The notes under the pieces were generated by a model. The model was given only the letters and a program-made list of their open reading frames with translations, was not told where the DNA came from and did no database searches. A stretch of DNA of 64,000 nucleotides from the NCBI GenBank assembly GCA_973895155.1, contig OZ316897.1:2619416-2683415 (forward strand). Reading direction: 5' to 3'. Source of the stretch: Marsupella aquatica. Its lineage: Eukaryota > Plantae > Marchantiophyta. Position numbers and translations under genes: made by a program. This document shows, piece by piece, positions 27,592 to 57,248 of the stretch. How positions within the stretch are numbered: the first letter of the stretch is position 1; each line of letters starts with the position of its first letter.

Positions 27592-30443
27592 TGCCAAGGT
27601 TATGCTCTCAACATAGTGTCAAATCCAGGTAGTGATGACTGGATTCTAGATAGTGCATGTACTTTTCACATTTGCTCTAGGAGAGATTTTTCAGTTCTTA
27701 CACGGTTTCCAACGGGTCAGTGTTGATGGGAAATGGAATCCCATGTCAAGTTGTTGGACTTGGATCTGTAGGATTTCAGATGTTTGATGGTGCTGTAAGG
27801 ACATTGAAGAATGTGAGATATATTCCCAGCATGATGAAAAATCTCATTTTACTTGGAGTTTTAGAAGCAAATGGCCATTAGTGAAGTTCTGCTAATGGTG
27901 TCCTTCAGGTTTCAACTGGTACTAAAATTATATTGAAGGGAAAGAGACATAGCAATCTATACGTTTTGGGGGGCAGTGTTGTTTGTGATGAAGCCAATGT
28001 AACCTTATCTCATGAGGAGACGACCCGGTTGTGGCACTTTCGTTTGGGCCACATGAGTGAAAAAGGTTTGGCTATTCTTCAAAAGAAAGGATTACTTTCT
28101 AATTTGCAGTCTTGTAAGTTAGAATTTTGTGAGCACTGTGTGCTAGAAAAGTAACACAGGAAACCCTTCGGAGTTGGAACTCACACCAGCAAGGAGGTAC
28201 TTGAGTATGTACATAGTGATGTGTGGGGTCCAGCCCCTACTCCCTCACATTCTGGACGGTTATACTATGTCACGGTCATTAGACGATTACTCAAGGTATG
28301 TGTGGATATACTTTCTACACAATAAGTCTGATGTTTTTGCCACTTTTAAGGAGTGGAAAGTCCAAGTTGAGAATCAGACTGGTAATAAGGTGAGATATCT
28401 TCGATCGGATAACGACGGTGAATACAATTCTGGGGAATTTGGAACGTATTGTAAGGAGCAGGAGATCATCCGCCCTCTCACAACAAGTTATACTCCTCAG
28501 CAAAATGGTGTTTCTGAGATACTCAACCGAACACTATTGGACCACTCGAGGAGTATGTTGAGTCAGTCATGCTTACCACATGAGTTTTGGGCTGAAGCTG
28601 TCAACACTACAACTTATTTGGTAAATTTTTCTCCATCCAGTTCTATTGGATTCAAAACGCCATTTGAAATGAGGTACGGGCGTTCAGCAGATTATTCACA
28701 TATGAGGATTTTTGGATGTGATGCTTATCTGCTTACACCTTCCCAGCTTCGATCCAAGCTGGAGTCCAAGTCAAAGAAGTGCATTTTCCTTGGCTATCAG
28801 AAAGGTGTGAAGGGTTATAGGTTATGGGATCCAGTAACCTGTAAACTAATTATAGAGATTTGTCCTTTAATGAATCCAGATCATCAAAGGAGGGGGAGAG
28901 TTCTCAGGACTCCCATACTGACAAGGGGAAATCCCCCATCCCGGACCGGGTTGAGGGGGAGATTAGTCATGATGGTGTTCATGACAGGAGAGATGGAGAA
29001 GCTTCGGGCTTGGAGCTGGTTCCTGTGATGAAACAAGAGGAGCAGATTGTTGTTGGGGTACCTCAAATTCAGCCAATAGCAGCAATAGATCAGCCTGAGT
29101 CATCTACTAGAAGAACTTCCATTCGTTCTACTAGAGCTCCTACCAGGTATGGTCAATGGGCAGACTCATCTAAGCTAGATGATATTGACATTGCACCTGA
29201 TGAAGATGATATGACTTTGATCTTGGAAGAAGGAGAGCCTTCTTTGTACAGTGAGGCTTGTGCTTCAGAGCAGAAGCATGAGTGGAATGCATCAATGCAG
29301 AGGGAGTTGCAATCTTTGAGTGACAACAACACTTGGGAACTAGTGGAGCTTCCAAGAGGTCAACAAGTGGTGGACAACAAGTGGATTTACAAGTTGAAGG
29401 ATAGTCCTTCAGAGGGTGGAGACAAGATCTACAAGGCAAGGCTTGTTGCCAAGGGGTTCACTCAAGAGAAAGGAGTGGATTACAATGAGGTCTTTTCACC
29501 GGTGGCTAAGTATTCCACAATTCGGATCTTGTGTCAGCTTGTTGTGTTTTTTAATCTGGTGATGGATTAGATGGATGTTGTTACAGCTTTTCTCTATGGC
29601 AACTTGGAAGAGTTGATCTTCATGAGACAACCACTAGGCTTTATGAAGAAGGGCCAGATGGATGTTGTTACAGCTTTTCTCTATGGCAACTTGGAAGAGT
29701 TGATCTTCATGAGACAGCCACTAGGCTTTATGAAGAAGGGCCAAGAGAACTTAGTTTGCAGATTTCTCAAGTCCTTGTATGGATTGAAGCAGTCTCCCAG
29801 ATAGTGGAACAAGCGGTTTGATGATTTCATGCTTGCTCAGTGTTTTACAAGGATGGTTTATGATCCTTGTGTGTATACAAAATCAGTCAAAAATGATGTA
29901 TTTGGTTTCATCATTCTGGTGATCTATGTGGATGACATGCTGATTGTGGCTAAAGATCAATCTGAGGTTGACAGTCTCAAGGCAAAATTGAGTGTTGAAT
30001 TCAGGATGAAGGATCTTGGTAAGGCCAAGAGGATCTTAGGGATGGAGATTTTTAGGAACTCTGAGACTGGACAGTTGTGCTTGAGTCAAGGCCAGTATGC
30101 GAGGAAAGTACTTGCACGATTCAACATGGAGAATTGTAAGCCAGTGAGTATTCTTTTAGCTTCACATTTCAAGTTATCATCGGCCTTCTCTCCTACGGAT
30201 GCTGTGAAGAAAGGTCTGATGACTAAGATTCTTTATGAGAAGGCAGTAGGTAGTCTGATGTATTTGATGACTTGTACTATGTCTAACTTAGCCCCAGCGA
30301 TGGGCAAGGTTAGCAGATTCATGTCAAATCCAAGGAAGGTACATTGGGAAGTTGTGAAGTGGATTCTCAGGTATCTGAAGGGAACACAGGACTATGGATT
30401 ACTATTTGATAATAGATCAAATAAAACGTTAGTTGGCTATGTA
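27592..30443 (+). pseudogene. Copia pol (protease, integrase, RT), disrupted, up to the CACTA insertion
   Basis: WILDSAC protease motif, LWHFRLGHMSE, integrase core, KARLVAKGF, YVDDML; stops, frameshifts and an 87-bp internal duplication. Confidence 0.92.
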
Positions 30444-31228
30444 CACTACAACACTATCGGTCGGTTTTGCGAAGACAATCTCATCGCAACTAACAAGCCC
30501 CTGATTTTCATAATTCTGGCTATTGCGAACATACGCGCATCGCACCCCCTTCGCACTTTGCGAACCTAATAACTTCGCACGCGGACCATCACAACGGCAT
30601 CGCAAAATCATGGCAAACTGAGAAGCTGAGAGGTTCGCAATATTCAATACTTCTGCGATCCATTATACGTCGCATAAGGTTCGCAAACATACACGCACAC
30701 GTCCCGCGCGGGCGTCAATATTTGAGACGGATTTACCATCGCATCATATTTGCGATTGATACTGGTTCAATTGTTTTAATGGGGATTGTATGACAAAGAG
30801 CGATACCGGTGATTTCAGAAGTTTGTGAACGGTTGCGATTAGGAAAGTGCGATCCTAGAAGTATCACAAAAACCCGACATATTTGGATCTGAAGTTCTGA
30901 AGTTAATTGACTCAAAAAGTGCGACGCCTTGGGGTTAATATTGTGCGATGGGAATGAGTTCTTAAAGGGTTCGCAAAATTATGATCACACAGGATTCAAT
31001 ACATTATTTGCGAGGGGTTTTCCTTGGAACCCAATGTGGAAGGCAAAATTGTTGTTTTATAAAATGGAAAAGCATGAACAAAATGATAGGGCTTCAAAGA
31101 ACCCTATACATGGACAAGAGGGGGGAAATATCTGATGCTAGGTCCGCCCTTCTAAACCTATGCTGCCTCTTCCTACCCTAAGCTCCGGCATGACAAGTCA
31201 CTCTCATGCATGTATCTCTACAAAATAA

Positions 31229-35005: not shown

Positions 35006-36167
35006 ATGTCTTCATCCTCTACAACTTCCACCACATCAGATTCCTCTTCCGATGAAGAAAGTCATCCTCCTCCTCAACCTGAACCAACCGTACGTCGACC
35101 TAGTGGTCCACCACGCCAACTTTGTGGTTGTAAAAAATGTGTGGGGATGGTTGTCCAAAAGTCATATGTATGTGCGGAGCACATTGCTCGATATGGCCAA
35201 CATCGAGGTCTTACACCGGGAGCTTCTTCATCCCGTATGGTGAGTTGTAAACTTACTGTGATTTCCATTTTATTTTGTAAATCTTGCTAGGTAGCATAAA
35301 ATAAAATTTGGGAGGTTCATCACACTCACTTGGTTCCATTTCTTCCTATAGGTATCCAGTAGGCCTACACCCACTACACCAACACCCTATGTTCCCTCAC
35401 AAGGAGTTCTAGATGCTATAGGCTCGGCACTTTCATAAGCTTTTCGTTTAGTGGCAGCAGGGCAAGGTAGTGTTGGGACAATTAAGGGTGACGGTATTAT
35501 TACAAGAGGGAAAAAAAAGTCAATAAGACAGCCTAGAGGGGAAGTGGATCAGTACACTTGTAGGGTTGATGGTAGATGGGGCCCTTGTACCTTCACAGGG
35601 AAGTGTATTCCTATCATAAAGGATTGGAATCCGGAGTGCCTTGGTTTGCCATGTGATATAACCTATGGTGAGGAGATAGAAGTTTGGGGAAGACGTTGGG
35701 TTGTCAAGAGTTCGACCCTAGGGGAGAGGCATGGGTATGGGATTTTCTCTTGTCAGGACATTATTGTGGATGATATGGGTGGAAAAGGGCGCTCTTCAGA
35801 TGGACCAACGTTGTTCCCGTATGGTGGACCCATTTACAAGAGGAGACATTGGAACATGATTCTTGTTCAACACCCTGAGTGGAAGACTTATGCATTGGAC
35901 ATGGATACTTTTGATGGTTGCACCAGAAAGTATTGTGACCAGCATATAATTGATGGTGATCCCATCCGTAGTGGGAATATTGCCGGTTTCATCAACAGTA
36001 CTGTGGGGACCCGGCCTAAGCGTAGGAAAAACTGTGAATGGGTTTTTGTTGATGGTCCCCCTCCAGCCCCTTATGGGCAGAGATATCATCATGACCATTG
36101 TCTAGTTGTAGCTAATAGGACCATTCTGGCTGGAGAGGAGTTGTTTACACATTATGAATGGGATTAG
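35006..36167 (+). pseudogene. SET-domain gene inside the CACTA element (exons 35006-35239 and 35352-36167; one in-frame TAA at 35436)
   Basis: VKSSTLGERHGYGIFSCQDI (motif I), GNIAGFINS (RFINH-like), LVVANRTILAGEELFTHY (ELxFDY-like). Confidence 0.75.
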
Positions 36168-39100
36168 GATTACTTTAGGGACATGTATTATACGTTCATC
36201 GTATGTGAACGTATGTTTTGTAATGACATGTTTTTTTTATATTGTTAATAATATGTTTCGAGCACTACTATATTTGGCGTTAATTTCATTGTGAATACTT
36301 TATTGTATTGTCTATAGAATGTGCGGCCTAGTCAAGATATGTTGCCAAGGAGGTTGAGAGCTACATATCAAGAAATGGGCTTGCCACAAGACGGGGAAAC
36401 ATCATCAGCAGATTTCTCATCAAGTGACAATGATAATGACAGTCCAGATGAAGGGGCACCTCGGACAGATTATGAGGTCATGCAAGACCAAGAGTCAGCC
36501 ATGGATGACTTCATGACAAATTGGTTTGGTGTAGACATTGATGGTGAAGGAGGTGTCCCACCCAATGAAGGAGACCCTCCACCAAATGTTGCACATGATC
36601 CAAGGCCTCAACGTACACCTGAAGGACAAAAACAATGGGAAGAAGTTGAGGCACATGCTAGAACACCTATTTATGGGGGTGCTCATTTGAATAGACTATC
36701 TGCCATCTTGGCATTGATGAATCTTCAGGCAAAACACAAGGCAAGCAATGCGCTACTATCGGATTTGTTTGCAATTTGCCATGATCTCTTGTTACCTAGT
36801 GAAAATGTGTTGCCAGGAACTTGGAAGGAGGCAAAGAGGGTTCTATCATCCATTGGCATGGAATACCATATCATTCATGCTTGTGTGAATGACTGCATTC
36901 TCTATCATGAGACCAATGCCAGCGCAACTGAGTGTCCAATTTGTCAAGAGCCTCGATATGAAACCAACATGTTGACCTCAAAGGTGTCTAGAAAAGCTGT
37001 TCGTTGGTTTCCTATTATTCCTCGATTGTTGCACATGTACCGATGTTCTGACTTGGCAGAATTGAGGGTATGGCATAAGACACATCGATCAGAGGCCGGT
37101 GTCATGCGGTTGCCAGTTGATTCCCCTGCTCACAAGCATGTGGAGTCACAATGGCTAGAATTTGCACGTGACCCTCATCATGTGAGGTTGGGGTTGGCAT
37201 CAGATGGGGTAAGCCCACACTCCCTTGGAGGGAAAGGGCGCCCTACTTCGGTTTGGCCGGTGGTTGTTATGAATTACAACCTTCCCCCATGGTTGTCCAT
37301 GAAAAAGGGATTCTTATTGCTATCATTGATTATCCCAGGTCCATCTAAGGTAAAAAACATGGACACCTACTTGGCGCTCTTGGTTGGGGAACTCCATAAA
37401 TTATGGGGGGGTGTATGGGCATATGATGGTCGGACAACTACAGGAGGGTTACCACGTGTCTTCCAATTGAAGGGAATCATTATGTGGACCATGCATGACT
37501 ATCCAGGTGAGTGGTATGGATTTGTATTTTTTTCATGTATTGGAGATCAAGTTTGTTTGGAAGGAAGTCCCTCTTTAATTCTATGTACATGAACTTTTCA
37601 ATTCCTTTGACTCTAATTGAGAATGTTATTTTGTGAGCACGGTTTGGGTTTGTTTTTGGGTTCCAAACTCAAGGGTACAAGGCATGCTCCACTTGTGGTC
37701 CAAGCCTTCACGATATGGCCAAGTACTCAAAATGGCTGCACAAGATAATCTACCTTGGTCATACCAAGTTTCTTCCACTTGGGCATCACATGAGGTCTGA
37801 CCCCCTTTTGTTTTCAGACTTTGACATGATCAATGGTGATGAGCGTGAGATACCTGACCGCACAATATTTTCGTATTGGAAATCCATAGCTGATAGGGTG
37901 GCAGACCCTGAAGATGCCATGGGATTTGATGGTAGTGGATTGACAAGGTGGGGTATACTGGCCACTTTGCCCTATTGGCCTGAGTTGAAGATTCATCACT
38001 TGTTAGACCCCATGCATATAGAGGGAAATGTTGGGAAGGCTTTGATCAAGCACTTTTATGGGGAAAAGAACATTAATTTTAGGGAGGCATGCCAGGATCT
38101 AGAACGACATCCAGATGTATGGATAACAGTTGATGAATCCACAGGGATGGAACATCGTCCTTCAGCTCCATGGGTTTTGAGTGTTGGTGAAAGAAGAGAG
38201 TTTCGACAACGCATAGGGTAGATGCGGTTTCCTACAGGCTATGGTGCCAATCTACGTAAGGCTTTTGGGATGGAGGACAGTCATAAATGGCCAATGTATC
38301 TCAAGACACATGACTATCATCGTTTACTACAACATATACTTCCTGTGGCAATCATAGGTTTGGGGAGTGAAGAAGTGCAAGACGCTCTTTGGTCACTGGG
38401 CACTTTGTTGAGATGGATATGCTCAAAGAAAATATATGAAGAAGAGATACCACGGATGGAGGTATTGGCAGCAGAGGTGGTATGCAAGTTGGAGAAGGCC
38501 CTCCCTCCTTCCTTCTTTGATTGTCAGGTGCATCTTCTCGTTCATCTTGTGAGGGAGGTTGCCATTGCCGGTCCGGTGCATTGTAGGTGGATGTATTGGC
38601 TGGAAAGGTATATGGCCGTGTTAAAGGCTTATGTACGGAACCGTGCACAAGTGGAGGGGAGCATGGCAACTGGATACTTGGCAGCTGAGAGTATGTTTTA
38701 TTGTAGTAACATCTTAGCTACCATTGATCCTAGTTTTCCACGCACTTGGATGGAAGAGAGGGAAGTGGAGGAGGACCGTTTAACAGGTGCAAAAAAAACA
38801 CGCTTACTAACCGCAGTGGAGTTGACACAGGTTAGTACTTTCATGTTGAGTAACAGCAATGTGATAGAAGATTGGAGAGAGTTTTATGAGGATGCAAAGA
38901 GGGAGAGTCGTCGCCCAAGGATCTTTCCAAAGTTCCTTGAGTATATGAAGGAGAAAGTACTTCAGTTGGATGCTATGGTGGCCCAAGGTGAGAATGTATC
39001 ACATTTTCCAGATATGACTCCTGAGGTTCGAACAATTGTTCATGGTCCTTTAAGACTTGTTCAAACCAGAACAGCAATGTGGACACAAGGGAGGCATTTC

Positions 39101-39586
39101 AGGATTTCTGACCTTGATGAGAAGAGGGGAAGAACTTTTGATTGTGGAGTTCATGGGCAGTTCATGCAAGATTCACAAAGTAGCCGTCATGACACTAATG
39201 TGATCAGAGATGTGGTGCCTCACTATGGGAAGATTGAGGAGATCTTGATCATATCCTATGATGCCGATTCCAAATTTGAAGAGTATGTCTTCAAGTGTAA
39301 GTGGTTCAAAATTCACCTGGTTGGTGATAATCGCACGGTACTTCTTGATGAGTGTGGGTTTACTCGACTGAAGACATCAGCAACTAGCTTTCAACCATCT
39401 CATTGGCAAACATCTGAACCATTTACATTCCCAAGTCACCTTGAGCAGTGTTTCTATATTCCGTACCCACCAGACCTAGAGTGGTCAGTTGTTATACCGT
39501 ATGTGCCACGGTCCCGTTCCATTATCTCGAAAAAACCTGACGTTATTATTGTGTCAAATGGAGGCGAGGATGAGGACCAGGTTTGA
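35006..39586 (+). pseudogene. CACTA transposase TnpD (exons 35006-35239, 36318-37506, 37641-39586), disrupted
   Basis: CGCKKC...H N-terminal transposase-associated motif, IHACVNDCILY, LGLASDG, NLPPW, MHDYPG, LDPMHIEGN, LKTHDYH, GPVHCRWMY..ER, FKCKW; acceptor CAG mutated to CAC at 37640 and TAG at 38219. Confidence 0.88.
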
Positions 39587-40574: not shown

Positions 40575-41384
40575 GTCTGGATACAAGGAGGTCTACAACT
40601 GGGTTTGTATACACTCTTGGAGGAGGATGTATCAGTTGGAAATCTACCTTGCAGAAGTGCATATCTCAGTCTACTACAGAAGCAGAGTATGTTGCAGCAG
40701 CAGAAGCAGCAAAGGAAGCAATTTGGTTGGAACACGATTTCGGACCGAACGAGAACTATTTCCTCTAAACGAGAAGTGTATTTTCATTTTCCGCCGAATC
40801 TCGCAAAATCAAAAGTTTTTTTCATCAAAAATGCATTTTTGGGGAAATAATGTAAAATTTTCGTATCGGAGTTCGGATTGAAACAGCAAATTTAATAATG
40901 ATCAAAACCAATGAAATTCATGCTAACAAACATTCATATTATCAAGGAACAATTAGATCCGAAAAACTTTATCCTCGACCTCATATTCACGCTCTCCAAA
41001 GATATATGAAAGGTCTTATCTATAAATCCATATCCACGTTTCGAGCCAAGTGCGATAACTGTATCGGACTCCGGATTTGAGCCACGAAAACTCCGACCCA
41101 ATCTCAGGTTTCTCAGTTTTTGGATATTTACCAAAAATATTTTACATCACAGTCGATAAGAATAATTACTGCACGGTTCGTCAAACTTACCTTGCAGTTA
41201 CCTCCGCAATTGACCAGTTACCTCCGCAAGTGACCATAGTCAACATGCCATTCTTTCAACAGCAATGCGCAGTCCGATAAAATTATCGCGAAAACTACGG
41301 GCGACAAAAATACTAGTCGACAATACTAAGATCCTTCGGTTCATCGGTTAAATTTCAAAATTCCTATCCATATGAAGAAAACTC

Positions 41385-41570
41385 TTCGCAATACCAACAT
41401 CAGATAAATTTATCGCTTCAATTTCAAAATTGCAACTTCCATATGAAGGAACCACTTTTGCAATACCAACATCAGATAAATTTATCGCTTCAATTTCAAA
41501 TTGCAACTTCCATATGAAGGAACCACTTTTGCAATACCAACATCAGATAAATTTATCGCTTCAATTTCAA
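41385..41570. repeat. Tandem repeat of 71-72 bp, each unit carrying AGATAAATTTATCG
   Basis: gcaataccaacatcagataaatttatcgcttcaatttcaaa three times. Confidence 0.85.
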
Positions 41571-41677
41571 AACTATATAATTTTGCCACGATGCACGTGT
41601 GAGAATGAAATTGGAAATCCAAGAAATATACCCTTTTCTGCTATTTTGTCGTTTAGGGTGACAGCCAATCAAAAGTG

Positions 41678-41713
41678 GACACGTGGGCCAACCCCTCAAC
41701 AGACACTATAAAA
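41678..41713 (+). promoter_or_regulatory. Putative Pol II promoter of the transposase (CACGTG G-box plus TATAAAA)
   Basis: gacacgtggg at about 41678 and TATAAAA at 41707, about 150 bp upstream of ATG 41858. Confidence 0.45.
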
Positions 41714-41857
41714 GGGCCACCGCCGATAAGTTTTTGGCGTCATTATCGAGAGTAGAGTTTTGGGAGTTGTGTTCTTGGAGCAACATTCTGTCCGTTGAGC
41801 CTTTCGTTTTCCCTGATTGTGAGAGGAATGCAAAGCCCCATAGTGTCTCGGATAGCC

Positions 41858-44800
41858 ATGTCTCAATCAGACACAGATTCACCTTCCAGTTCAGTTGAAT
41901 CCTCTCCTAATCTTGTCGCTCGCTGTTTGCCAAGTTGCATACTTAAAGCTCTACCTCTCTCACAGCAAATAGTGCCCAAAATCTCTGACTCAGATTCTGA
42001 TGCAAGTTCTGGTCCTGAGCCCAGTGCTTACTATGTGTCGCCTAGTAAACCTGAGAAACGTTGTCTCTTGAGCGTTCCATCGCCAAGAAATGAGAAACTT
42101 TCAATCCCAGGTTTAGGTCCGAGACGTCGCTTCAGGCCATCCATCCCGGGTTATGGAGAGGGTATCCGGCGACCGATATGCGTATCGCAGTCGGCATTCA
42201 AGTCGCCACATTCAACACAAGTTCAACGACGGATCTTTCAGTCTCTGGGTGAGGATCGGGACACAGAAATACAAAGACCGATACAACGATCGGTCTTTGC
42301 ATTGCCTGGACTGGATGTGCGAGCAAGCGAGGGAATCGGACTGCAAAGTCCAGACTCGGCCCTTTCTCGAATGGTCCGTGGGAATCGTGGTGAACAAGTG
42401 CTCAATTTTCCAGCAGCTCGCGGAGTTGTTGGGACTGCACGTGCGAATCCATAATCTCCAAGTTCTCAAGGGCGGACTATTGGTTCCAGGCTCCAAGTAT
42501 CGAGGAGAGGTCTTAGTGGCGTTCGGGTTATGTATAGAGAGCCACGGAGTCCAATTGTGTTTTCAGATGAGTCGAGTGCATCGGAGGACGAAGATGAGGA
42601 AGGAGATAGAGAATCCGATATAATAGCACAAGTTGTGTCTGAATGTTTAGAAGGAGCTGTCGAAGAGAATAGCTATAGTCGTCTATTCAGTGCCCCTCTA
42701 AATGCGTCAAGGAGATCTATAGAGGATGGTAGCTCAGCAGAGAGTGATGCATCTATTTGCGAGGCACCTGAAGGACCCGAAAATGCCAATGTTATGAACG
42801 GATTTCAGGTTGTAGAGAAGTCAAATGAGCCTAGTAAAAAAGATAGGGACCGAATTACTAGGAAAGACAATGTGATAAATGACAAATTGAATAGAAACAA
42901 AATGAGAGAAATTCATAAGTATTCGTGTTGTGATAATTACTGTCTGCGGAATTTGGGTCTGCTAGCCGTGACGAAACAATGCACTTATTACTATGGGCTA
43001 TCCTACCCAGAGAAGAACGTCCTTCTAAGAGGATGTGTGAAGGGTGGGCATGCTAGTGCAAGTGGTTACTCAGTTAGCGGTAGATCCTTTTGTCGAAGTG
43101 GTTTTAAGAAATTATTTTCACTAGGAAATAATCGTCTCCAAAAAATCTCGCAGAACATGTTTTTTCGGATACAGATTGGTACAGTTTGTCGAGAAAAATC
43201 ACCCGCACATCTTGGTCTCGTCCAATGGCTGGATGATTTTTTTTCCACAAATGTCGAGAGTCTCCCCAACAAGGATATCTTTCATTTACCTGACAATTGG
43301 AAAAAAACAAAAGTTTTTGATGCCTTCCAGTCTGAAACTCTAATGCGCCAAGAACAAGGCATGACATATTCGTGGTTTGTTCACATTTGGAACAAGGAGT
43401 TTCCTCGTGTGCGCATCCCCAAAAGGAGCCATTTCTCCACCTGCGCCCCTTGTACTGAATTCAAAGCTCTCCGTGACAAGGCAACACTCAAAGCAGAAAA
43501 GAGTAAGTTTCTAAACCTGTGTGTTACTCCCGATAATTTTATCGGGTTGAGTATTCATGTGCTTCTTCTTTGGCCATGTGAGTGAATATATCGTTTGAAC
43601 AGTTTGAATACTAAACCTGATAAATTTATCGCTGTCACAGTTTTTCATTATGGTCTTGTGTTTGAATACTGAACCCGATAAATTTATCGTTGTCAGGGTT
43701 TATCATTACGGTCTCGTGTTTGAATACTGAACCCGATAAATTTATCGCTGTCAGGGTTCAACATTGCGGTTATCATGTTTTGTCCTAAACATTTTTATTA
43801 TTGTAGGAAAATTCTCAACATTGCTAAACGAGCATCGGAAGGCACAAGCAATCGAGAGGGAGAAGTTAGCAAAGCATCGGAGCAAATGTTACAAGAATCC
43901 GGAGAAATATTTGGGCATCTGTATTGATGGAATGGATCAAAAGAAGATAGAGTTACCTCATTTCATTCGATGTCCGAAGAATATGGATGAAAAGTATTTC
44001 ATCCCCGTACACGTAGTGGGTTGTTTGATCTTTAACAAACAATTAAGTTCAAATGTTTTTTTGAACTATCCTAATATTCACAATGATAGCAACCTGACCA
44101 TCCACGTTATCCAGCATATTCTGAATACTTGGGAAGGTCTGCTCCCTCCAGTGCTTTACCTCCAGCTTGATAACACAGCTCGGGAAAACAAGAATAAATA
44201 TCTTATGGCATATTTAAATATGTTGGTGGAGATAGGTGTTTTCCAGAAAATAAAGGTTGGTTTCCTATTGGTGGGGCACACCCATGATCAAATTGATCAA
44301 ATGTTTAGCAAGTTTTCTTCAAAATTGAACAAGCGGAAAGCTTTCTGGTTGGACACTCTTTCAGCAATCATAGAGGAATCCTACAATCCTACGGCAAAGA
44401 TATTTTTCATCGACGAGGTTGCCGATTTCAAGAAATTTGTGTCAGACAAGGATCAAGCAAATGACAAGGATATGGATGGTCAGGTTCTACGTACTCTCCA
44501 CGGCATAAGTGCTCAAAAACAATTTCGGATTACTAGAGTACTCGAAGATGGAAGTGCTCGATCCGTATTCCATGCCAAACATCTTTCAACGACAATCGAT
44601 TGGGGGGAGACGGTGGATTTTTTTCGGTACATTCCATCATCTAGAATGTGGGTCGCACCACAAATGGCATTGAAGTCGGCCACGGGAGTGACAGGAGACA
44701 ATGAAGAGCAAGAGAATGATGTTGAGGAACAAGATGAGCGGGCGGCTCAAAGTTATTTGTCAACTCTTCAAAAATATCGAAGAGCAATTGAAGATGGATT

Positions 44801-45416
44801 CAATTACTTTGACGACGCAGATCGTCTATGGTGGGGTCATTTTTTTGACAAACAAAAAGAAGTGATTCAGCATCACCTGAAACCTGGACAATGGAGTTTT
44901 GATTGGAGTTGACCCAAGGTAAACGTACAGAGAGAACTTCAGAGTAATCCTACGGAAGCAGCAATGGAACCTAGCTTGGTTGATAAAGTAGCGGGTGTGA
45001 GGACAGTCATGTATTCCGGAAGTCGAAGAAAAGTCACAGAAATTGGAGACTTCAAGGATCTAGAGGTGAATACTAAATTTGCAATGATATGTGTAGCAGC
45101 CCATCAGGATCCCAAGGGAAGACCATTCTGGATGGCAAAAGTGACTGAGATTCTCACAAGAATTAACGACATCCCGGAGCGGATTAAAATCACTTGGTAT
45201 GCAATGGATTCGGAGGAAGAGTCTGCAATTGAAGGCAGATATTATCCGGAGAAAGAGGCTTCGTCTAGCAAAGTACTGGAGGATGAATTGTCCCTATCAG
45301 AAACTGCCATTTATGCGTATAACTTTGCGTTATTGGCAAATAGTACTCTCCCTATACAAACAAGATGAATCATTCAAAATGCAATGGAGACTGTAGTCGT
45401 TGATAGTCGAAGCTAG
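41858..45416 (+). pseudogene. DDD-type transposase (Sola-like / DUF7869-like); exons 41858-43502 and 43807-45416; in-frame stops at 42452, 44910 and 45366
   Basis: Cys clusters CCDNYC and FSTCAPC, candidate catalytic IDGMDQ, QLDNTARENKN, LVGHTHDQIDQMFS; phase-1 GT-AG intron 43503-43806 joins the frames; the ORF pieces are all co-frame. Confidence 0.8.
43600..43760. repeat. 58-bp tandem repeat in the transposase intron, each unit carrying the CGATAAATTTATCG palindrome
   Basis: tttgaatactgaacccgataaatttatcg...gtca three times. Confidence 0.85.
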
Positions 45417-45931
45417 TTTCAGGTTTAAGTTATAATGGTTATCGTTCCCATGAATATGTACAGTGGTTATCGTTCTGGGACTATGTACTCCGCAACTATA
45501 ATGATATCTTTTTTTTTTAATAATTGCAATGACAAACCAGTTAGAGAATACAATGTTGTCCGATAAGATTATCGACAACACCGCGACAGTCCGATATATG
45601 CAAAGTCCGATAAATTTATCGCATTAATAAATGTGACAAAGGTTCTTCCTCATGGAATATAGAAGTCGATAAATTTATCGACAACTTCATTGGTGATTGA
45701 CATTATCCTAACGAGCACATGCAACTAATCTAATAACATGTCATTGAGATCATCCTCATTTGGTGTTCTGGGAGGCTCTTCCTCAGTTTCTTCTTGTTCC
45801 TCTTCGGTCTCCTTCACGACCTCAACTACGTAAGTTGATGTCCCGAGTACACCCAATTGGCCTGCAATTGGTGGTTGAATCTCATGACCTTAAACGCCGT
45901 GCCCTTCAATCTGGGATTCTTCATATAAATT

Positions 45932-48900
45932 CTAGTTTGACTCCAGAATCATGATCCGGGATTTTACAAAACCAATCTGCGCAGAACTCTTATCAACAGC
46001 ACAACCCTGGCGAGAATTGAGGAGCGTAGCAGCTAATGTCGATCCGGTTCCACAACAAAGATCAATAACCCAATCCTCTTTCTCAGAGAAATGGGAAACA
46101 AACCAAGCCCCTAAACCAACAGGCTTTTGATATGGGTTCACAACAAATCCCAACGGATCAACGGACTTCTTGGTTACACATGGAACCTTGATGATATTGA
46201 CGCGAGACTCATTCGGTTGGAAATTGTACATGTTCATGTTCCGAATGCCTTCCTCACTATAGAAACCTATCGACCAGTTCTCAAAACCCCACGCCAATCG
46301 AGCTCCAGCGGGACGCTCATGAATGTTAGTCTTCTCCCAGATTCCAGCCTCGACCCCACAGTTGCATACACTCTCCAGTGCAGACATCACCATATGCGTT
46401 TGTTGTAGTGAATGGATCACAACAAACCTCCACTGCTTAGCGGTCGTCATCTTTGAGAAACTTGTCAACATGTCTAAAATGTCCTTTTCTATGAAGGCCA
46501 CTTCATCAAACTCCGAACCAGGAGCATTAAAACCATACGGAATATCCGCAACCGTAAGGGTGTAAGCCCTTGGCTGAACAAAAGAATCCAAAATTCGAAC
46601 ATCACCAACATGGAGATAGTAGGGAAAAGAATCCCCGTCTGCATTTTTCCATGTTTGTTCAAACGCTTCTGCTGTGCCCTCGCCTAAGGACCTCAGCTGA
46701 TTGTACTTATCGATTGCAGCAAGCACAAAATTCTTAAACACATAAGGGATTTCAGCTGAGGGAACAATAACCTCCCCCGCAGAATTATAAGTGACAGCCG
46801 GAACCACTTTGCTTTTCCTTTTTGAATTAATCTTCAGCTGTAAGAATGTCAGACACATCTATAGTTAGAATAGCGTGAGATGAATGCTAAAGCCGATAAA
46901 AATCTCGCGATGGAGCACGCTAGCCAATAGATGGAATCGCTTAGAAACCAACAAAGGAATGCTAAAGCCAATAAAAATCTCGCGATGGAGCACGCTAGCC
47001 AATAGATGGAATCGCTTAGAAACCAACAAAGGAATGCTAAAGCCGATAAAAATCTCGCGATGGAGCACGCTAGCTGATAGATGCAATCGCTTAGAAACCA
47101 ACAAAGGAATGCTAAAGCCGATAAAAATCTCGCGATAGAGCATGCTGTGAGAGGAATGCTTACCGCGTCACTCAATTTCTCCGCCCATATGCCAAGGACC
47201 GAGACATCTGTTTCGTTGGGAAACATTTCTCTGCATGTTGCCCAATCTGGCTGACCAGATATCTGCAAAAATAGTTTCTTCACCTTGGCAAGCTTTTTCA
47301 ACTTCTCACCTTCCTTATGCATTTGATCCAAAGTGATCACCTTCCCGATAACCCTATTCAAGAGACGCTTGACATGCTCTTTATTTGACAGTCCTTGGAG
47401 ACCTCGAAATGAATTTAAGTTGAGGTCACCAGCAAGTTTATTCATTTTAATCTCCCTTACCGTCAAAGGTTTTACCTTTCCCTTTGCGTTCGTCGTTGCC
47501 ACAATTTTTTTGGGTTGTCCTAAGACAATACCTTTCTCCCACATCTGGAAAATCTTCTCCTGAAGATCCCAAATTTCACCTGTTTAGAAAGCAATTTGGA
47601 AAGCCGAATCATGTTTGGCCATGGAGTCACGAACTCCCGGCGTGTACTCCATCATGCATTCTTGACAACATGCTTCGCGAACATCTTTAGTCGAGCCCAC
47701 ACCCATTTCAAGGAAAATATTGTGACAAGCGCGAACTTGGTCAATTTTAGTCATGTTCTTCCGATACTCCTGGTCATAGTTATACTGGAAGCCTAACTTT
47801 CGGACCTCGAATCTCGTAAGCCCAGCGTAAACCCAAGCTTCCAGCTCACCATATATTTGCTTCCCGTACATTTTAAACAACTCGGACTTTGCCCGAGCAC
47901 CATGATTCCCTCCAATAATTCTATACTTCCATACCCTTGACTTCAGGATGTCCCAATCTGCGTTTGTGGGACAATCCTTCGGATCCACACACAGCACGAA
48001 CGGGGCACTGAAGTTGGTGGGGTTTTTCATGAGAAGTATCTTGATATTTTCCACATGCAATCTATCCACTGGTCTAATCAAAGTTGACAAATCCCCCTCC
48101 TCATCAAATATGAGATTGTCGACATGCAGAAGCACAGTTGTCCTTTGCACCCTTCGTTGCATCAGAAGACTGAGCTCTGCCTTGATCGCGTCCGTCTCAT
48201 ACATCGAAAGAGCCGTCTCCTCCTCCTGATCAGCCTACAAAAGCGTTGCAAATTCAATTAAGGAAAGAAACTGCAAGATTTTTATCGGAGTTCGCATTTG
48301 TTCAACATAACTCCACAATCCGCAATTCAGGAAATAAACAGCGAGATTTTTATAGGATTTCATGTTTGTTAAACAGTACAACGACATAGTACTTACCAAT
48401 GGCGCCGCAGGAACCGCGACTGGAACTGATGGAATTGACGGAGCTCTATCTACTTCTGCAGCCACCGTCTCAGTCCAGCCAGTCCTCTTCCTCTTTGTGC
48501 TAAGTCCAGAACCAGATGGCCCAGATCCCTCGGATCCTTTACTTTCGCTTGGTTTAACGGATGGTCCTCGACGGTTGCCCCGGCCTCTCCCACTACCGCC
48601 AATTTCCTGGCTCTTCTTCCCACCGTCAGAGGTTCCCGCGGCATCTCCCCTGCCGCTACCTCTCCCTTTCCCTTTTCCACTTCCCGAAACTCGACCAGAA
48701 GTTGTAGGTTCGTCCATGTCAATATGTGTAGAGGATTGCAATGGTTCTTTCCGCCCCGATATTTTATCGGCATTAGAACCACCGCTGCCACTTGAACCTG
48801 GTTTCTTGAAAACAATTTTGTGGACAGGTTTGAACTCTTCACCCACAAGTCTCTTGTACTCTGCGTTCACCCTTGGAAGCATGATGGCATCACAATCTTG

Positions 48901-49365
48901 CACATACTGGCCGATCCAAGCCGAACCCATAACATTCATCTCTCTTGCTGCCCGAACATCGGCAACAAGGGGATCTTCTGGATAACTGTCCATCGATTTC
49001 TCATCAAAGTTATCGAGAGTAACAATGAGAGATGTGAAACCCTTGCGCCCACACATTGTCAAGAAACTAAGGCCCTCTGTCAACACTTTTCCCTCCCCGT
49101 GGCCAACCATGAACTCGATGACGGCAACAGCAATGACAGGGCCATACGAAATATTAACCTTCGCCGATTTTTGCAACTAGACCCAAAGGATTGGGGTAGC
49201 ACAGTCTTCGAAACCCGTGGACTGTAATCTGGCGTCACGGAAGTACCATGACTTCTTGATACACTTGACCTCTTCACAAATGTCTTCACTTGTCCAAATT
49301 GCATTGGTGAGGCTTGTCATGAGACTTTCTGCCTCAGCAGATCCACTCTTTCCACTAGCAACCAT
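45932..49365 (-). pseudogene. ParB-like domain + beta-class N6A/N4C DNA methyltransferase fusion; exons 49365-48397, 48234-47164, 46837-45932 (~980 codons); in-frame stops at 49177 and 47584
   Basis: ParB/Srx-like LIRPVDRLHVENIK...YRIIGGNHGARA; MTase motif IV ADIPYG precedes motif X YQKP and motif I VIDLCCGTGSTLAA; both introns GT-AG, phase 0. Confidence 0.78.
46882..47143. repeat. 75-bp tandem repeat (~3.5 copies) filling intron 2 of the ParB-MTase gene
   Basis: Units start at 46882, 46957, 47032, 47107 and contain the palindrome variant CGATAAAAATCTCG. Confidence 0.9.
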
Positions 49366-49664
49366 GGAAAAGTCTGCAAATAAACAAATTCCAATGCAAA
49401 GAGCGATAAAATTATCGCCGCCAATCTCACAACACATGTGGACATGACATCTCATCACACAAGGACAAAGAGACCGATAAAATTATCGCAAAAGTGAGCC
49501 TTCTTTAAATTGACGGCCGAGTGTACAGGTCGAAGAATCAGCTACGGAACCCTAAATCCAAAACCTTAACCCCTAAACCTAAATCCTAATCATAGTTGAA
49601 CCTCGCCAGAGTGAAGCGTTCGATCCGCTTCTTGGGCCATTGGGGAATATGAGTGACGCGATGA

Positions 49665-50285
49665 TCATAAGCCCACAGCTTCACTAGTCTCAGGATTCAC
49701 TACTGCTACTGAATACCGGCGTGACGGAATGTCACAACAAGCATTTGTGCAGCATGGACAGATCTCACCATTGGCAAGGACATTCGTCCACAGGCAACTT
49801 ACATAGATCAAGTTAAAGAGCCCACAGACCGGCTGGGGGGGGAGTTGACGAATCTTGTATGAATATAGTTTCCCACCAGTGTCAATAAAAAACTCGGTGG
49901 CAAGAGGATTGTCCAGCTCGTCAATCACATCCTGAATCTCATCGAATGCTCTACGTCTGTTGTCGACATAGAATTCTGGCTCATAAGCAGGATTGCCCTT
50001 CACAACATGACAGCAGTGGAGTATAAAACGTCTTACTGCACCGGTTTTCAGAAAGAGTAGGATAACTCTTCTAGAAAATCCAACATATCTATCCCACCGA
50101 ATATAAATTTCTCCCCCTACCTGATCTACGTAGAAGTGAAATGCGTTATGGTAAAACGGTTTTACTACCAGCCTGCATATCTTTAAAATTAGTGACTCAT
50201 CCAGCCTCCTTAGCTGGTCCAACATGGCTCCATTCCCCCATTCTGGAGGATCCAGGTAGGGTACAAAAATGCGTCGCTCGAGCAT
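49665..50285 (-). CDS. Orphan transposon cargo ORF (206 aa, Cys-rich C-terminus)
   Basis: Intact ATG-initiated ORF between palindrome clusters; no family recognised. Confidence 0.5.
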   Translation of the reverse strand: MLERRIFVPYLDPPEWGNGAMLDQLRRLDESLILKICRLVVKPFYHNAFHFYVDQVGGEIYIRWDRYVGFSRRVILLFLKTGAVRRFILHCCHVVKGNPAYEPEFYVDNRRRAFDEIQDVIDELDNPLATEFFIDTGGKLYSYKIRQLPPQPVCGLFNLIYVSCLWTNVLANGEICPCCTNACCDIPSRRYSVAVVNPETSEAVGL

Positions 50286-50577
50286 GGCCTGATCACCGAA
50301 TAGAAATCAGGAATAAATTTTGGAGAACATACTAATTACAATTCTACAAGTTTCATCCAACTTTATAGTACCTTGTATAACGGGCTGTGAAGCCAATGCA
50401 CTTGTCAGCTAATCGTCCAAAGAGGCGCAAAAAAATACACTCTGGACCACACAACCCGAAGTCAGGGGAGGCAGAGTCAATTATATTCAAAGTGTTTCTT
50501 TACAAGCACCCAAAATCGACTAGAGGAATGAGGAGTGCGATAAATTTATCGGATGTTCGCAGCAATGCCTCATCCAC

Positions 50578-51107
50578 TCAGACTCGTCCATGCCATGCAA
50601 GAATTGTCCGCTTCCCGCTTTCTCCAAGATTTATCCAAACTCTACGAAACTGATCTAACTGCTCATACGAAAAGCACCCAAGCATATCTATGGGAGGGAG
50701 GAAATGAGTTTCCTCTCGGAAGACCCTAGCAATATGTAGGTTTGAGAGAAGGTCGGCATTAGGAATGCTTGCAAGCATTTTGTTTATGTCATTGATCTCA
50801 CGAACTGCATATTTCAATAGCGCCCAAAATCATGTACCAACAACAAGATGGTTCCATTTCTTCGAGGTGGCTCCAAGACAAATGATTGTTCTCATTCGAG
50901 TCAGTCGTTCTTCTGGTAGAAGTTTTAGGTCAAGGCCAAGGTGCTCATCTTGTGTGCAAGACAAGGCTAGGAGGGGCCAAATGTGAGAAGTCCATTCAAC
51001 AAACTTCCGCATTCCACACCGGGCACTTTTCCTCGAATATATTTCCTACGCTTGTGGGCTAAAACGGATCCCATCTTTGCAATGATTAGATTCTCCGATG
51101 CAGCCAT
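50578..51107 (-). pseudogene. Disrupted orphan cargo ORF
   Basis: ORFs 51012-50830 and 50817-50578 are co-frame across one TGA; the upstream ATG at 51107 is out of frame. Confidence 0.35.
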
Positions 51108-51301
51108 GAAGCAGAGCTACCAAAACCACCAATAAAAATACCTTCAATCACCAGGTGTAACCGAACACATCCACAGTACCAACCCTGCACGACAGTTTAA
51201 CGATTAGGACTCGTGACGTCTTATATTCGTTGCGCAAGGGTAGGACTTGTTTATTTAAATATGTCCTTCCAAGACGCGCCTCAATGAAAAGGTCGAAACA
51301 G

Positions 51302-51631
51302 TCATCGTGAAAGGTTCACCCAAGGGTCTTCGTTCCAAATCTTACAACAGAAGTGAGCCTGTTTGTGGTACTTGTTGTCAAGACGACGACAACAATAGTT
51401 ACAAGAAAACTCCAAAGAATGTAAACACGCCGTTAACATCAACCTCGAATGAATTGGAACTCCTACATCATTCATTCCGCAAAATTCAATGCGGAGAGGA
51501 TTCTGCCTATCTCTAGGATCAGTACCACCCATCCACAATACTCCTATACCGATGGGGAGAACTTTGAGTCGCATGAGTCTCTTGTACAACCGGCGTGCAC
51601 GTTTGACACAATTTTCAAGGAAGACAGCCAT
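51302..51631 (-). CDS. Orphan cargo ORF (109 aa, Cys/His-rich)
   Basis: ATG-initiated ORF inside the TIR element; no family recognised. Confidence 0.35.
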   Translation of the reverse strand: MAVFLENCVKRARRLYKRLMRLKVLPIGIGVLWMGGTDPRDRQNPLRIEFCGMNDVGVPIHSRLMLTACLHSLEFSCNYCCRRLDNKYHKQAHFCCKIWNEDPWVNLSR

Positions 51632-52627
51632 TTGTCACAATACCTGTTGTCCACGGAGTGCAATCGACCTTCCGTTGTGCCTCCTAAACCCGGCAACACT
51701 GCGACATCAGAGATGAAGATGAGTCTCCAAACAAAACAAAGGAAAATGATTCTCAGAGGAGGATGCGATAAGTTTATCACACTCCGCATTCGAATTGAAA
51801 ATATGACTTCCTCAGACACCTAACCCCTGAATTCAATCTTTCACAAAAATGACAACTCCGATAAATTTATCGGATTCTCAATTACTCCTCTTTCCATGAA
51901 AGGAATGAAGACTCTGATAAATTTATCGGAATGAAGGCAACACCTCTCTAAACACTAGATCAAATGATTGCAACAGAGGAATGCAAAATGCGATAAATTT
52001 ATCGCAGTCCGCTCGGATCTGGACATTTTACACTAAATGACTAGTTAGTCTTACATGGAGAACTTGAACAGGAATGGCTGTTCCGATAAATTTATCGGGA
52101 TTTCGGTAGAAAGAGTCGAATCGCTTGGGAGGAATGTAAGACTTGATGGGAGTTTGGTATTCGCTCTCAGTCAGGAGATATTTGCTCTGGCGAAAGCAAA
52201 CGTTTTATGGGCAACCGCTCCTCTTTATATAGGAGACGCTCTAAACCATGGTTAATTTCCCCTTAACCATGGTTAAGTTTCCCCTTTACCTGGGTTAGTG
52301 CGTGGTCGTTCCTGGATTACGCGGTTCGGACCAAGTTACTCGTAGTTTGGACTTTTTCACTGACGGAATGTAAAACCCGATGCACGTATCGCTCCCTGCA
52401 TTCCCACGGCGATGCAATGGAGGAATGTGGCGTTTCGGAGAGTTTTTTCCAATTTTATCGGTCATTGCATTGCCTTAGAAAAAAAATGGGATCGGGCTAA
52501 ACGAGAACTCCGACACACTTCTCGGTCGGTCCGAAATCGTGTTTTGGACAAGTTGATCGCGGAGATGGATTTAGAGCATGGAAAAATGACTCTAAACTGT
52601 GATAGTCAGAGTGCTCTTCACTCTCAC

Positions 52628-55305: not shown

Positions 55306-56090
55306 CAGAGAGGTTGAGAAAACTCACGCTCGCGCAGCGAGGTACTACCTTAAGACGTGTCCAGATACTGAAGAGTTGGGGCATTGTTTCCATGTATCTT
55401 CAGCATTCGACGAGGCTCAAAGTTTGCGCATTCTATCGAGCAGAACCCCGCCCATGAGAATGTGGACATCGATTCGTTAGCAGTCGACGAGGCTCAAAAG
55501 TTTGTGCTCTCTCGAGCATAATCCGGCCCATGAGAGGGTGGACATCGATCGATTCGTGCAAGTAATCGGCATTCTAGCTTTCAGAATTCGGATACAGTGT
55601 CTTCAGCTTTCAGAAATCGGATATAGTGTCTTCAGAGGATTTAGTTTTAGTAGGTCTCCGGGTACGTTGGCCTTTGGTGGGAGGCGAATCTGATACCTAC
55701 GAGTCTGTGCATGTGAGTCAAGTATTCAAACAACGTGACTGAATAGTTTGGGTGAACATCTCAGTAACCTATTTTATGATAGCCCTTGATTGGATAATTT
55801 CGCTTGAATAGTGACGTGATTAATATTCCTCATGTGGTTCTTTCCTCTTGATGCTCAGTGGAGTCGATCTGCCCATACGACATCAGTTCTGTGATCTTAG
55901 AGTTCGTACAACATTGATTCTGGGCTCTTCTACTTCGTTCGACATCATTTCTGGGCTCTTCTACTTCGTTCGACATCATTTCTGTGCTCTGTAACTTCGA
56001 CTCCGGTGCAGACGATAAGCGGCTGTCCAACGAACGACAGATTGGAGAAGCTAAGAGCATCTAGCTGCAAGCGAATTCCCCTTGGCTGAG

Positions 56091-57248
56091 ATGGATACCG
56101 AAGCAAATGCAGCTCCTCAGCGAAACTTAGCAAAAGGTGTTGACGAGCATCCTACAATCCCTGCCCGTGGTGTGCGTCGTAAGAAGAGTGGAGCCAACTG
56201 GAAGAGCCCTGGTGACTACGAGCATCCGGCAAGTCTGGGCAGTGTCATGCATGGTGAGAGCAGTGCAGCAACACCAAAGAGGCCCGTAATTCACAAGCCT
56301 GTGCGTCGTGAGGACAGTGGAGCCAGTGGGGAGAGTATTTCACCGAAACCTGCTGCACCTCGATGTAATCCGCCGGGCATGAGAATCCGAGGAGCAAGAC
56401 AGATGCGAGGACAGATGGCACCCTCCTCTTTGAACAAAGGGAAGAAAGTTGACAAGCCCAAGGTCGACCGCAAGAAGGGCCGTCCCAACGGAGGAAAAAT
56501 GATAGACGTCGTCGCTGTAGAGAAGGAACTCCAGAGCGAAGCGGATATCGAGGTGAAGGTGAAGTATATCCTGGAGCAGTTCAGCGTATGCTGGGAAAGG
56601 TACAACGAGGAATGGGCGCGAGCTGGAAACCGGGCCGGACGCAAGGGCGTAAAGCGGGATCCAAACCGGGCCGACCTCAAGGCTATGGCGGAGCTCAACC
56701 AGTTACGCCAGCACGTCAATGGGGAGTGTGGCGTGTACGGGGACGTTCCGGGTGTTGCGGTGGGCGATACTTACCGCTACTTGGCAGAGGCATTCCTAAT
56801 CTCCCTCCATAGGAAGGCCCGAGCAGGCATCGACTTCGTCACAGATAAAGATCCGAGATTCACGGACAGACATGGAAAGTTAATTTCTATAGCCTTGAGC
56901 GTGGTCATTTCTAAACATACCCGGTACAATGACAAGGAGGATGGAGACACGATATGGTACAAGGGTGAGGGTGGCAACTGGAGCGGTGGCCAAGAAGGAG
57001 GATGGAAACACGATCAGAAACTGGAGAATGGGAATTTGGCCCTCGTGAACTGCCATCGGAACAGCCACTCGGTTCGTGTAATACGAGGCTCCAAAGCCCC
57101 CTCCAACCGTAGTCCGGCTGACAAAATCTACGAGTACCTTGGCTTGTACGATGTGAAGGATTACAAATATGAACGTGCAGGGTCGAGCGACGCCAAAGGC
57201 TTTACATTCATGTTAGTTAAAAAGATTTCTGAAGATGTGGCTAGATAA
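56091..57248 (+). CDS. SRA/YDG-domain protein (SUVH-like SRA, no SET domain), intronless
   Basis: GDVPGVAVGDTY, LHRKARAGIDF, SVVIS..Y.DKEDGDTIWYKGEGG, DQKLENGNLAL, VRVIRG, YEYLGLY (YDG changed to YLG). Confidence 0.85.
   Translation: MDTEANAAPQRNLAKGVDEHPTIPARGVRRKKSGANWKSPGDYEHPASLGSVMHGESSAATPKRPVIHKPVRREDSGASGESISPKPAAPRCNPPGMRIRGARQMRGQMAPSSLNKGKKVDKPKVDRKKGRPNGGKMIDVVAVEKELQSEADIEVKVKYILEQFSVCWERYNEEWARAGNRAGRKGVKRDPNRADLKAMAELNQLRQHVNGECGVYGDVPGVAVGDTYRYLAEAFLISLHRKARAGIDFVTDKDPRFTDRHGKLISIALSVVISKHTRYNDKEDGDTIWYKGEGGNWSGGQEGGWKHDQKLENGNLALVNCHRNSHSVRVIRGSKAPSNRSPADKIYEYLGLYDVKDYKYERAGSSDAKGFTFMLVKKISEDVAR

Follow-up and report, generated by a model that had tools for sequence, protein, structure and literature searches.

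The window analysed here, a 64-kb stretch of contig OZ316897.1 of Marsupella aquatica (Marchantiophyta), holds a whole copy of a large DNA transposon (Table 1), bounded by terminal inverted repeats (TIRs) with arms of 32 nt that are 88% complementary and by a 4-bp target site duplication (TSD), TTGG, at 40727-40730 and 52544-52547. Two genes were found inside it on opposite strands and in convergent orientation: a transposase gene in four open reading frame (ORF) pieces, the third of which matches DUF7869 (E 4e-50), and a three-exon gene, referred to here as the ParB-like methyltransferase (MTase) gene. The latter encodes, in this order, an N-terminal domain, a disordered linker rich in G, S, K and R, a ParB/sulfiredoxin (Srx) fold followed by helices like those of the ParB helix-turn-helix (HTH), and a permuted beta-class amino-methyltransferase. 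We consider it probable that this gene is a decayed copy of an accessory gene of a DUF7869-transposase (Sola1-type) DNA transposon, whose product would have served to bind and mark the element's own DNA.

Table 1. Features of the transposon copy and of neighbouring elements, in window positions
Feature	Position	Strand	Remarks
DNA transposon, whole copy	40731-52543		11.8 kb; TIRs 40731-40762 and 52512-52543
Transposase gene	41795-45368	+	ORF pieces 41795-42454, 42530-43585, 43764-44912, 44964-45368
ParB-like MTase gene, full	45725-49365	-	three exons with ~1,050 codons in total; this copy has four in-frame stops
Exon 1	48397-49365	-	lineage-specific N-terminal domain; G/S/K/R-rich linker (~48804-48472)
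Intron 1	48235-48396	-	162 nt, phase 0; GT 48396-48395, AG 48236-48235
Exon 2	47164-48234	-	ParB/Srx-like N-domain, then helical ParB-HTH-like region (~47436-47320)
Intron 2	46838-47163	-	326 nt, phase 0; GT 47163-47162, AG 46839-46838
Exon 3	45725-46837	-	beta-class amino-methyltransferase, acidic C-terminal tail
Motif YRIIGGNH	from 47925
Motif GGNHGARAK	47913-47887
Motif DIPY	46546-46535
Motif NPYQKP	46138-46121
Motif DLCCGTGS	46063-46040
Copy difference	47585/47586	+	C/G in nearly all other contigs, CGA (R); window TAA
Copy difference	45933	+	C in nearly all other contigs, TGG (W); window TAG
Copy difference	45892	+	C in nearly all other contigs, GAA (E); window TAA
Copia-type LTR retrotransposon pieces	26671-30569	+	gag, integrase, RVT_2
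SET-domain ORF (CACTA element)	35451-36167	+	E 3e-6
Transposase_21 (CACTA element)	36321-37592
DUF4218 (CACTA element)	38222-39586
SAD/SRA ORF	56082-57248	+	E 4e-34

On the minus strand between 45.7 and 49.4 kb, four long ORFs (48235-49176, 47584-48204, 46849-47544 and 45932-46858) and a shorter one (49177-49458) follow one another. Homologues of the exon pieces were recovered at E-values of 1e-141 and 1e-115, and the reading frame is, judged from sequence, far beyond chance. The original prediction had joined five fragments into one protein of about 980 aa ending at 45932, by way of two phase-0 GT-AG introns and two in-frame stops. A single multi-exon gene is what we also find, both introns have their sites in place and at positions conserved in relatives, and the N-terminal domain and G/S-rich linker that it described are present in exon 1. 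The two stops are likewise there (TAG at 49179-49177 and TAA at 47586-47584), but the window copy carries four in all, the others being a TAG at 45934-45932 and a TAA at 45892-45890; position 45932 thus belongs to a premature stop, and the frame of exon 3 runs past it to a natural stop at 45727-45725, which gives seven fragments and the greater length listed in Table 1. The stretch added in this way is an acidic tail ending in EDDLNDMLLD that is common to all homologues: beyond the point at which the window reads 'ESN*', they continue with a conserved EWxxxxEAxExGxGxxGxEVQPPxxGELGT…EDLNxxLLD, and the window holds the same tail in frame. Exon 1 had no Pfam match and gave only a weak BRCT-like lead; it is conserved only in close relatives, being 35% identical to the N-terminal ORF of L001 (a 9.4-kb metagenome contig from ENA) on both sides of the stop at 49179-49177, where L001 has a sense codon. 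A 206-aa ORF just upstream within the element (49665-50285, minus strand) was rejected as a part of the gene, having neither a Pfam match nor a counterpart in any related locus.

The exon structure is well reflected in the relatives. In metagenome and Logan contigs with 54-84% aa identity, exon 2 ORFs start just after the conserved AG (…Q/DEEEET, the slash marking the junction) and stop a few codons past the conserved GT (…EKLxDQ/V…), and exon 3 ORFs start at a conserved CAG (…LQ/FKxxSKRKRK). The acceptor position of intron 1 is kept in P0046, P0048 and L007, and both donor and acceptor positions of intron 2 are kept in the homologue ORFs and in L007 and L008. When the DNA was aligned with L007 and L008, the exons were well conserved and the introns collapsed except for one motif block; intron 1 aligned poorly with L007 apart from this motif. 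Uninterrupted chains in which homologues of both exons, 2 and 3, follow each other collinearly occur in P0074 (789 aa), P0097 (981 aa), P0194 (995 aa) and P0106, in Chara braunii (GBG86584, GBG87022 and GBG66685) and in Ginkgo (Gb_37443), and the uninterrupted fused homologues range in length from 670 to 995 aa. The predicted introns are supported by the conserved ORF borders, by the collapse of the intron alignment and by the uninterrupted, collinear deeper relatives. That we are dealing with separate genes, or with ORFs arisen by chance, has next to no probability: metagenome gene callers do give the exons as separate ORFs, but single uninterrupted chains run collinear with exons 2 and 3 and the ORFs of relatives break exactly at the conserved GT and AG sites. 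No splice joints were seen at the intron borders in short, very deep contigs from four runs of unrecorded kind, taken for genomic DNA; a few odd joints in single contigs have sides of 22-30 nt and look like repeat artefacts. One of the Chara proteins, GBG86584 (P0062, 1,825 aa), contains two tandem units of ParB-like domain and MTase, whose MTases lie around residues 370-580 and 1490-1680, and is probably the result of two adjacent element copies merged by annotation.

The family is under strong purifying selection and the window copy is a dead pseudogene. The ratio of non-synonymous to synonymous substitution (dN/dS), a check that the original prediction had proposed, was computed between subfamilies with stop codons masked as X and skipped. 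Comparison of the window with L007 gave 0.05 over exon 2, and comparison with L008 gave 0.12 over exon 3; dS is saturated in both cases. The other copies were read from contigs of the four sequencing runs in which the stretch occurs; their pattern fits a high-copy repeat in presumed genomic DNA. At three of the four stops nearly all of these contigs have a sense codon, and the residues restored (W, E and R; Table 1) are those found in homologues at the same positions; L002 and other homologues also read straight through the position of the stop at 47586-47584. The fourth stop, at 49179-49177, is absent from the listed copy differences. The 27 listed exon differences private to the window comprise 10 synonymous and 17 non-synonymous ones; most are C>T or G>A, and several strike residues that are otherwise invariant, e.g., H>Y in HN(I/Y)DQEYRK. 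The changes of the window copy are neutral decay after insertion.

For the domain assignments, exons and their sub-pieces were searched and folded each on its own. The product of exon 2 is predicted, from structural modelling, to have a ParB/Srx fold in a ParB-like arrangement, which is not the same as a proven CTP clamp. P0045 shares 84% identity with exon 2; its AlphaFold2 (AF2) model has a mean pLDDT of 62 with core blocks at 73-86, and the Foldseek matches of this model (probability 1.0, E from 4.5e-4) include Noc, ParB, PadC, KorB, the ParB-N of pNOB8 and sulfiredoxin; all 26 top structural rows belong to the ParB/Srx superfamily. Structural alignments by VIA, which cover residues 23-310 of the model, gave Z-scores of 7.7-9.1, e.g., 8.0 with PadC (root-mean-square deviation 3.0 over 100 residues), 7.7 with Caulobacter ParB (2.5 over 99 residues) and 7.8 with Arabidopsis Srx (89 of 89 residues aligned). 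The helical region that follows matches the ParB HTH weakly (Spo0J residues 151-193 at E 0.096; Pfam HTH_ParB at E 0.038 in three of 14 members). In the Atlas, phage ParB_N clusters score 0.93 with residues 1-205 of P0045, the homologue of window positions 47587-48204, which we take as a lead only. The nearest named Atlas clusters to the same residues, by protein-language-model features, are those of fungal DUF3723 (0.95, above phage ParB_N), and DUF3723 may represent another branch of the ParB-like domains in eukaryotes.

Exon 3 is, according to its predicted structure, a beta-class amino-methyltransferase fold. Its AF2 model (pTM 0.70) found CcrM first in Foldseek (E 7.5e-11), the top matches lying between 7.5e-11 and 1e-8 at probability 1.0, and CcrM was followed by M1.HpyAVI, RsrI, BceJIV, TTHA0409, MboIIA, bdelloid N4CMT and PvuII; a sequence search of the PDB with exon 3 alone gave nothing relevant. 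The motif order is the permuted one, with DIPY at residues 98-101 of exon 3, NPYQKP at 234-239 and DLCCGTG at 259-265, and ADIPYGF (motif IV), NPYQKP (HPxxKP-like), DLCCGTGS (motif I) and AVD (motif II) are invariant in 16 sequences. PF01555 is present in exon 3 homologues at 55-72% identity, and deeper relatives score 27-66 bits against it. Motif IV of streptophyte members reads DIPY, DVPY, DAPY, DFPY, DLPY or DIPH, the wider family also includes DVWY, and the canonical DPPY occurs in the deeper relatives P0097, P0194, P0110, P0111 and P0153. The domain order proposed originally, i.e. a ParB/Srx-like domain around YRIIGGNH, a helical region and a beta-class MTase in which motif IV precedes motif I, has held up under structural comparison with ParB and with the Rossmann amino-MTase fold, and motifs IV, X and I were found to be invariant in 16 homologues; the proposed profile searches fared less evenly, since the homologues carry PF01555 and the window itself falls short of the Pfam profiles, as described below.

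As to the base that is modified, adenine-N6 is the most likely target, as a predicted activity, since D-x-P-Y is the form of motif IV in this family and DPPY that of its deeper relatives. An N4-cytosine methyltransferase like DN4MT1 of Marchantia or N4CMT of bdelloid rotifers, adding N4-methylcytosine (4mC) to the element or to the genome, appears improbable. The beta class comprises N6-adenine as well as N4-cytosine enzymes, the structural matches include N4CMT and M.PvuII, and the published Ectocarpus description of a comparable protein leaves 4mC or N6-methyladenine (6mA) open (PMC12477816); against this, N4-cytosine enzymes typically have S-P-P-Y, where the present family has D (DPPY in deeper relatives), and the best structural matches are N6-adenine enzymes. 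The kinship to Marchantia DN4MT1 and bdelloid N4CMT is one of enzyme class only: they share the beta-class N6_N4 MTase fold, whereas MpDN4MT1a/b and N4CMT are host genes with S-P-P-Y (TSPPY in DN4MT1; bioRxiv 10.1101/2021.02.12.428880) and no ParB-like domain has been reported in them.

The element is studded with a palindrome of its own. CGATAAATTTATCG (CGATA-N4-TATCG) occurs in 17 copies with at most one mismatch between 41275 and 52097, where 0.02 are expected, and all copies lie inside the element, with none elsewhere in the window. They are located in the subterminal regions, the transposase introns, the intergenic space and the 5' region of the ParB-like MTase gene. L001 has its own palindrome, CGATACCGGTATCG, in 10 exact copies (its 12-mer core occurs 17 times), e.g., at 1269, 2549, 2699, 3918, 4090, 4246, 6044 and 7361, in equivalent places that include both introns; the outer arms are the same as those of CGATAAATTTATCG and the centre is different, a pattern that suggests that the site and its binding protein co-evolve between element lineages. 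A longer variant of about 26-30 nt, GAATGC-N5-6-CCGATAAAAATCTCG, is present once in intron 1 (48273-48298) and, inverted and amplified 3.5-fold, in intron 2 (46883-47133), which consists mostly of a 75-bp x3.5 tandem array of this conserved motif (46882-47146). Its copies therefore flank the ParB exon, and they form the only intron block that is conserved in L007 and L008 (81-84% aa identity); the motif could serve to bind a protein or to allow pairing within the RNA.

Several points weigh against the interpretation given at the outset. There was no Pfam ParB_N match in the window, in 14 close homologues or in 10 long relatives, and a PDB sequence-profile search with the ParB-like N-domain returned nothing relevant; the ParB assignment is supported from structure only and by a model of middling quality (pLDDT 62). 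The arginine box of ParB, GERRxRA, binds CTP, and in this family it is not kept beyond its last Arg-Ala, the invariant motif being GGNHGARAK. Exon 3 alone scored 23.7 bits against PF01555, below the Pfam cut-off of 26.7, and its motif IV is D-I-P-Y, which retains the D, P and Y but is not DPPY, and drifts across the wider family, so that some lineages may be inactive. CGATAAATTTATCG is a candidate binding site that could belong either to the ParB-like part or to the transposase. Splicing is predicted from donor and acceptor positions conserved in relatives and not from RNA. Finally, the Sola1 label was taken from the literature by description (PMC12477816), the element itself being shown here only to have a DUF7869 transposase; the Repbase paper gives no TSD length for Sola1, and a literature search on DUF7869 found nothing.

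Some of these points also bear on the possibility that the methylase part is catalytically inert and that the protein is a DNA-binding or architectural factor which helps the transposase to find the palindromes or to assemble on them, comparable to the Myb-like second protein of Harbinger elements. The departure of motif IV from DPPY and its drift (DIPY, DFPY, DIPH, DVWY) would fit this, as would the loss of the CTP box; however, 16 homologues of 52-72% identity show no variation in NPYQKP, in the D and Y of motif IV, in the motif I G-x-G or in the acidic residue of motif II, dN/dS over the MTase exon is low, and the adenine-N6 methylases Erm and KsgA are active with N-I-P-Y and N-L-P-Y. We regard an inert methylase as rather unlikely. 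In the reading that we prefer, a self-binding and self-marking accessory protein, the ParB-like module would bind the element's own dispersed palindromes, the methylase would then mark the element DNA, with N6-adenine the most likely target, and the protein might serve transposition or shield the element from host silencing. The window copy would make no full-length protein and would at most offer binding sites and be moved in trans. A further step would be to see in the ParB-like MTase protein and the lineage-varying palindromes a self-recognising epigenetic system of a land plant, which would place 6mA (or 4mC) on the very transposon that encodes it, with the opposed intron motifs acting as a feedback switch on its own expression or splicing; taken as a whole, this is a speculative extension to which we give little credence.

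The ParB-like MTase gene does not travel alone. All four transposase pieces match L001 and L002, the third and fourth also match L008, and the second and third match L003, L005 and L006 more distantly. A ParB-like MTase and a DUF7869 transposase are paired in every related locus with enough flank, in convergent orientation in L001, L002 and L008 and in divergent orientation in L003, L005 and L006, and the pairing persists in loci where either protein shares no more than 20-34% identity with its counterpart in the window. An alignment of long fused proteins used as a homology query returned only itself, low-complexity N-terminal words having filled the candidates. Because the pairing persists at 20-34% identity, fused chains exist in Chara and Ginkgo, and the design is known from brown algae, the association of methylase and transposase is, as far as sequence comparison can tell, old and not a recent capture by a plant. 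The original prediction had proposed a prokaryote-type enzyme eukaryotised within a plant transposon; the location inside an element with TIRs and TSD stands, but the pairing in every related locus does not fit a capture peculiar to a transposon of plants. That a single plant transposon recently acquired a ParB-MTase gene horizontally from a phage or bacterium, and later gained introns in it, is very improbable, although both domains are prokaryotic in type and fusions of ParB and MTase are common in phages and plasmids: the same two genes are found together at about 20-34% identity of transposase and MTase parts, Chara and Ginkgo have fused chains, and the design is known in brown algae (PMC12477816).

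Among the closest known systems is Sola1-1_Ec32 of Ectocarpus, which encodes a 1,104-aa protein with a ParB-like domain and a DNA MTase on the strand opposite to the transposase, and for which the idea of self-marking has been put forward (Genome Biol 2025, PMC12477816). By description rather than by sequence, the two have in common a large DNA transposon, a gene opposite the transposase, a ParB-like domain followed by an amino-MTase, a length of about 1,050-1,100 aa and the proposed role; the window differs in its land-plant host, in being a dead copy and in its motif IV, D-I-P-Y. The Plavaka elements of red algae (Bostrychia) encode PAG2, an N6-adenine MTase with a SET domain, and PAG3, a ParB domain with a 2-oxoglutarate (2OG) oxygenase, with tandem inverted repeats adjoining (bioRxiv 10.1101/2025.02.11.637652). 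They share with the present family a ParB-like domain, a DNA-modifying enzyme, a giant transposon and inverted-repeat arrays as presumed binding sites, but belong to the CACTA/Plavaka superfamily, and the red-algal ParB is fused to the oxygenase while the MTase is a separate protein. Prokaryotic and phage fusions of ParB and N6_N4_Mtase, taken together with beta-class MTases such as CcrM, M.RsrI and M1.HpyAVI, have the same motif order IV-X-I, an HPxxKP motif resembling NPYQKP, the Rossmann fold and an N-terminal ParB fold; the window family differs from the fusions in having no significant ParB_N match, an extra helical region, a long N-terminal extension, introns and a transposon context, whereas the prokaryotic and phage fusions are found in the context of phage packaging or restriction-modification. 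Eukaryotic N6-adenine MTase clades have been described that include a ParB-HTH-fused Dam-like clade of chlorophytes and a haptophyte clade with an origin in ParB-Tls loci of phages (Iyer et al. 2016, PMC4738411), and we rejected these as the identity of the gene, since none matches the permuted, transposon-borne family. A literature search on transposons with ParB-MTase genes returned only papers on bacterial ParB.

The surroundings of the element contain other mobile DNA and a further domain-bearing ORF. In an adjoining CACTA element, an ORF with a SET domain lies directly upstream of Transposase_21 and DUF4218, and pieces of a Copia-type long terminal repeat (LTR) retrotransposon are found on the same strand as that ORF. 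An ORF with a SAD/SRA domain, which binds methylated DNA, is located about 3.5 kb past the right end of the element (Table 1).

The idea and the domain design have already been published for brown, red and green algae, and the gene described here is a further example of a known design, not a new kind. What is added is an example from a land plant, with a conserved exon-intron structure, purifying selection and palindromes that vary from lineage to lineage and are found in both introns. An active family would provide a transposon-encoded writer of a DNA mark other than 5-methylcytosine in a land plant, directed to the DNA of the element through a ParB-like reader of its specific palindromes, and with it a way, open to testing, by which plant genomes could acquire 6mA or 4mC and giant DNA transposons manage their chromatin.

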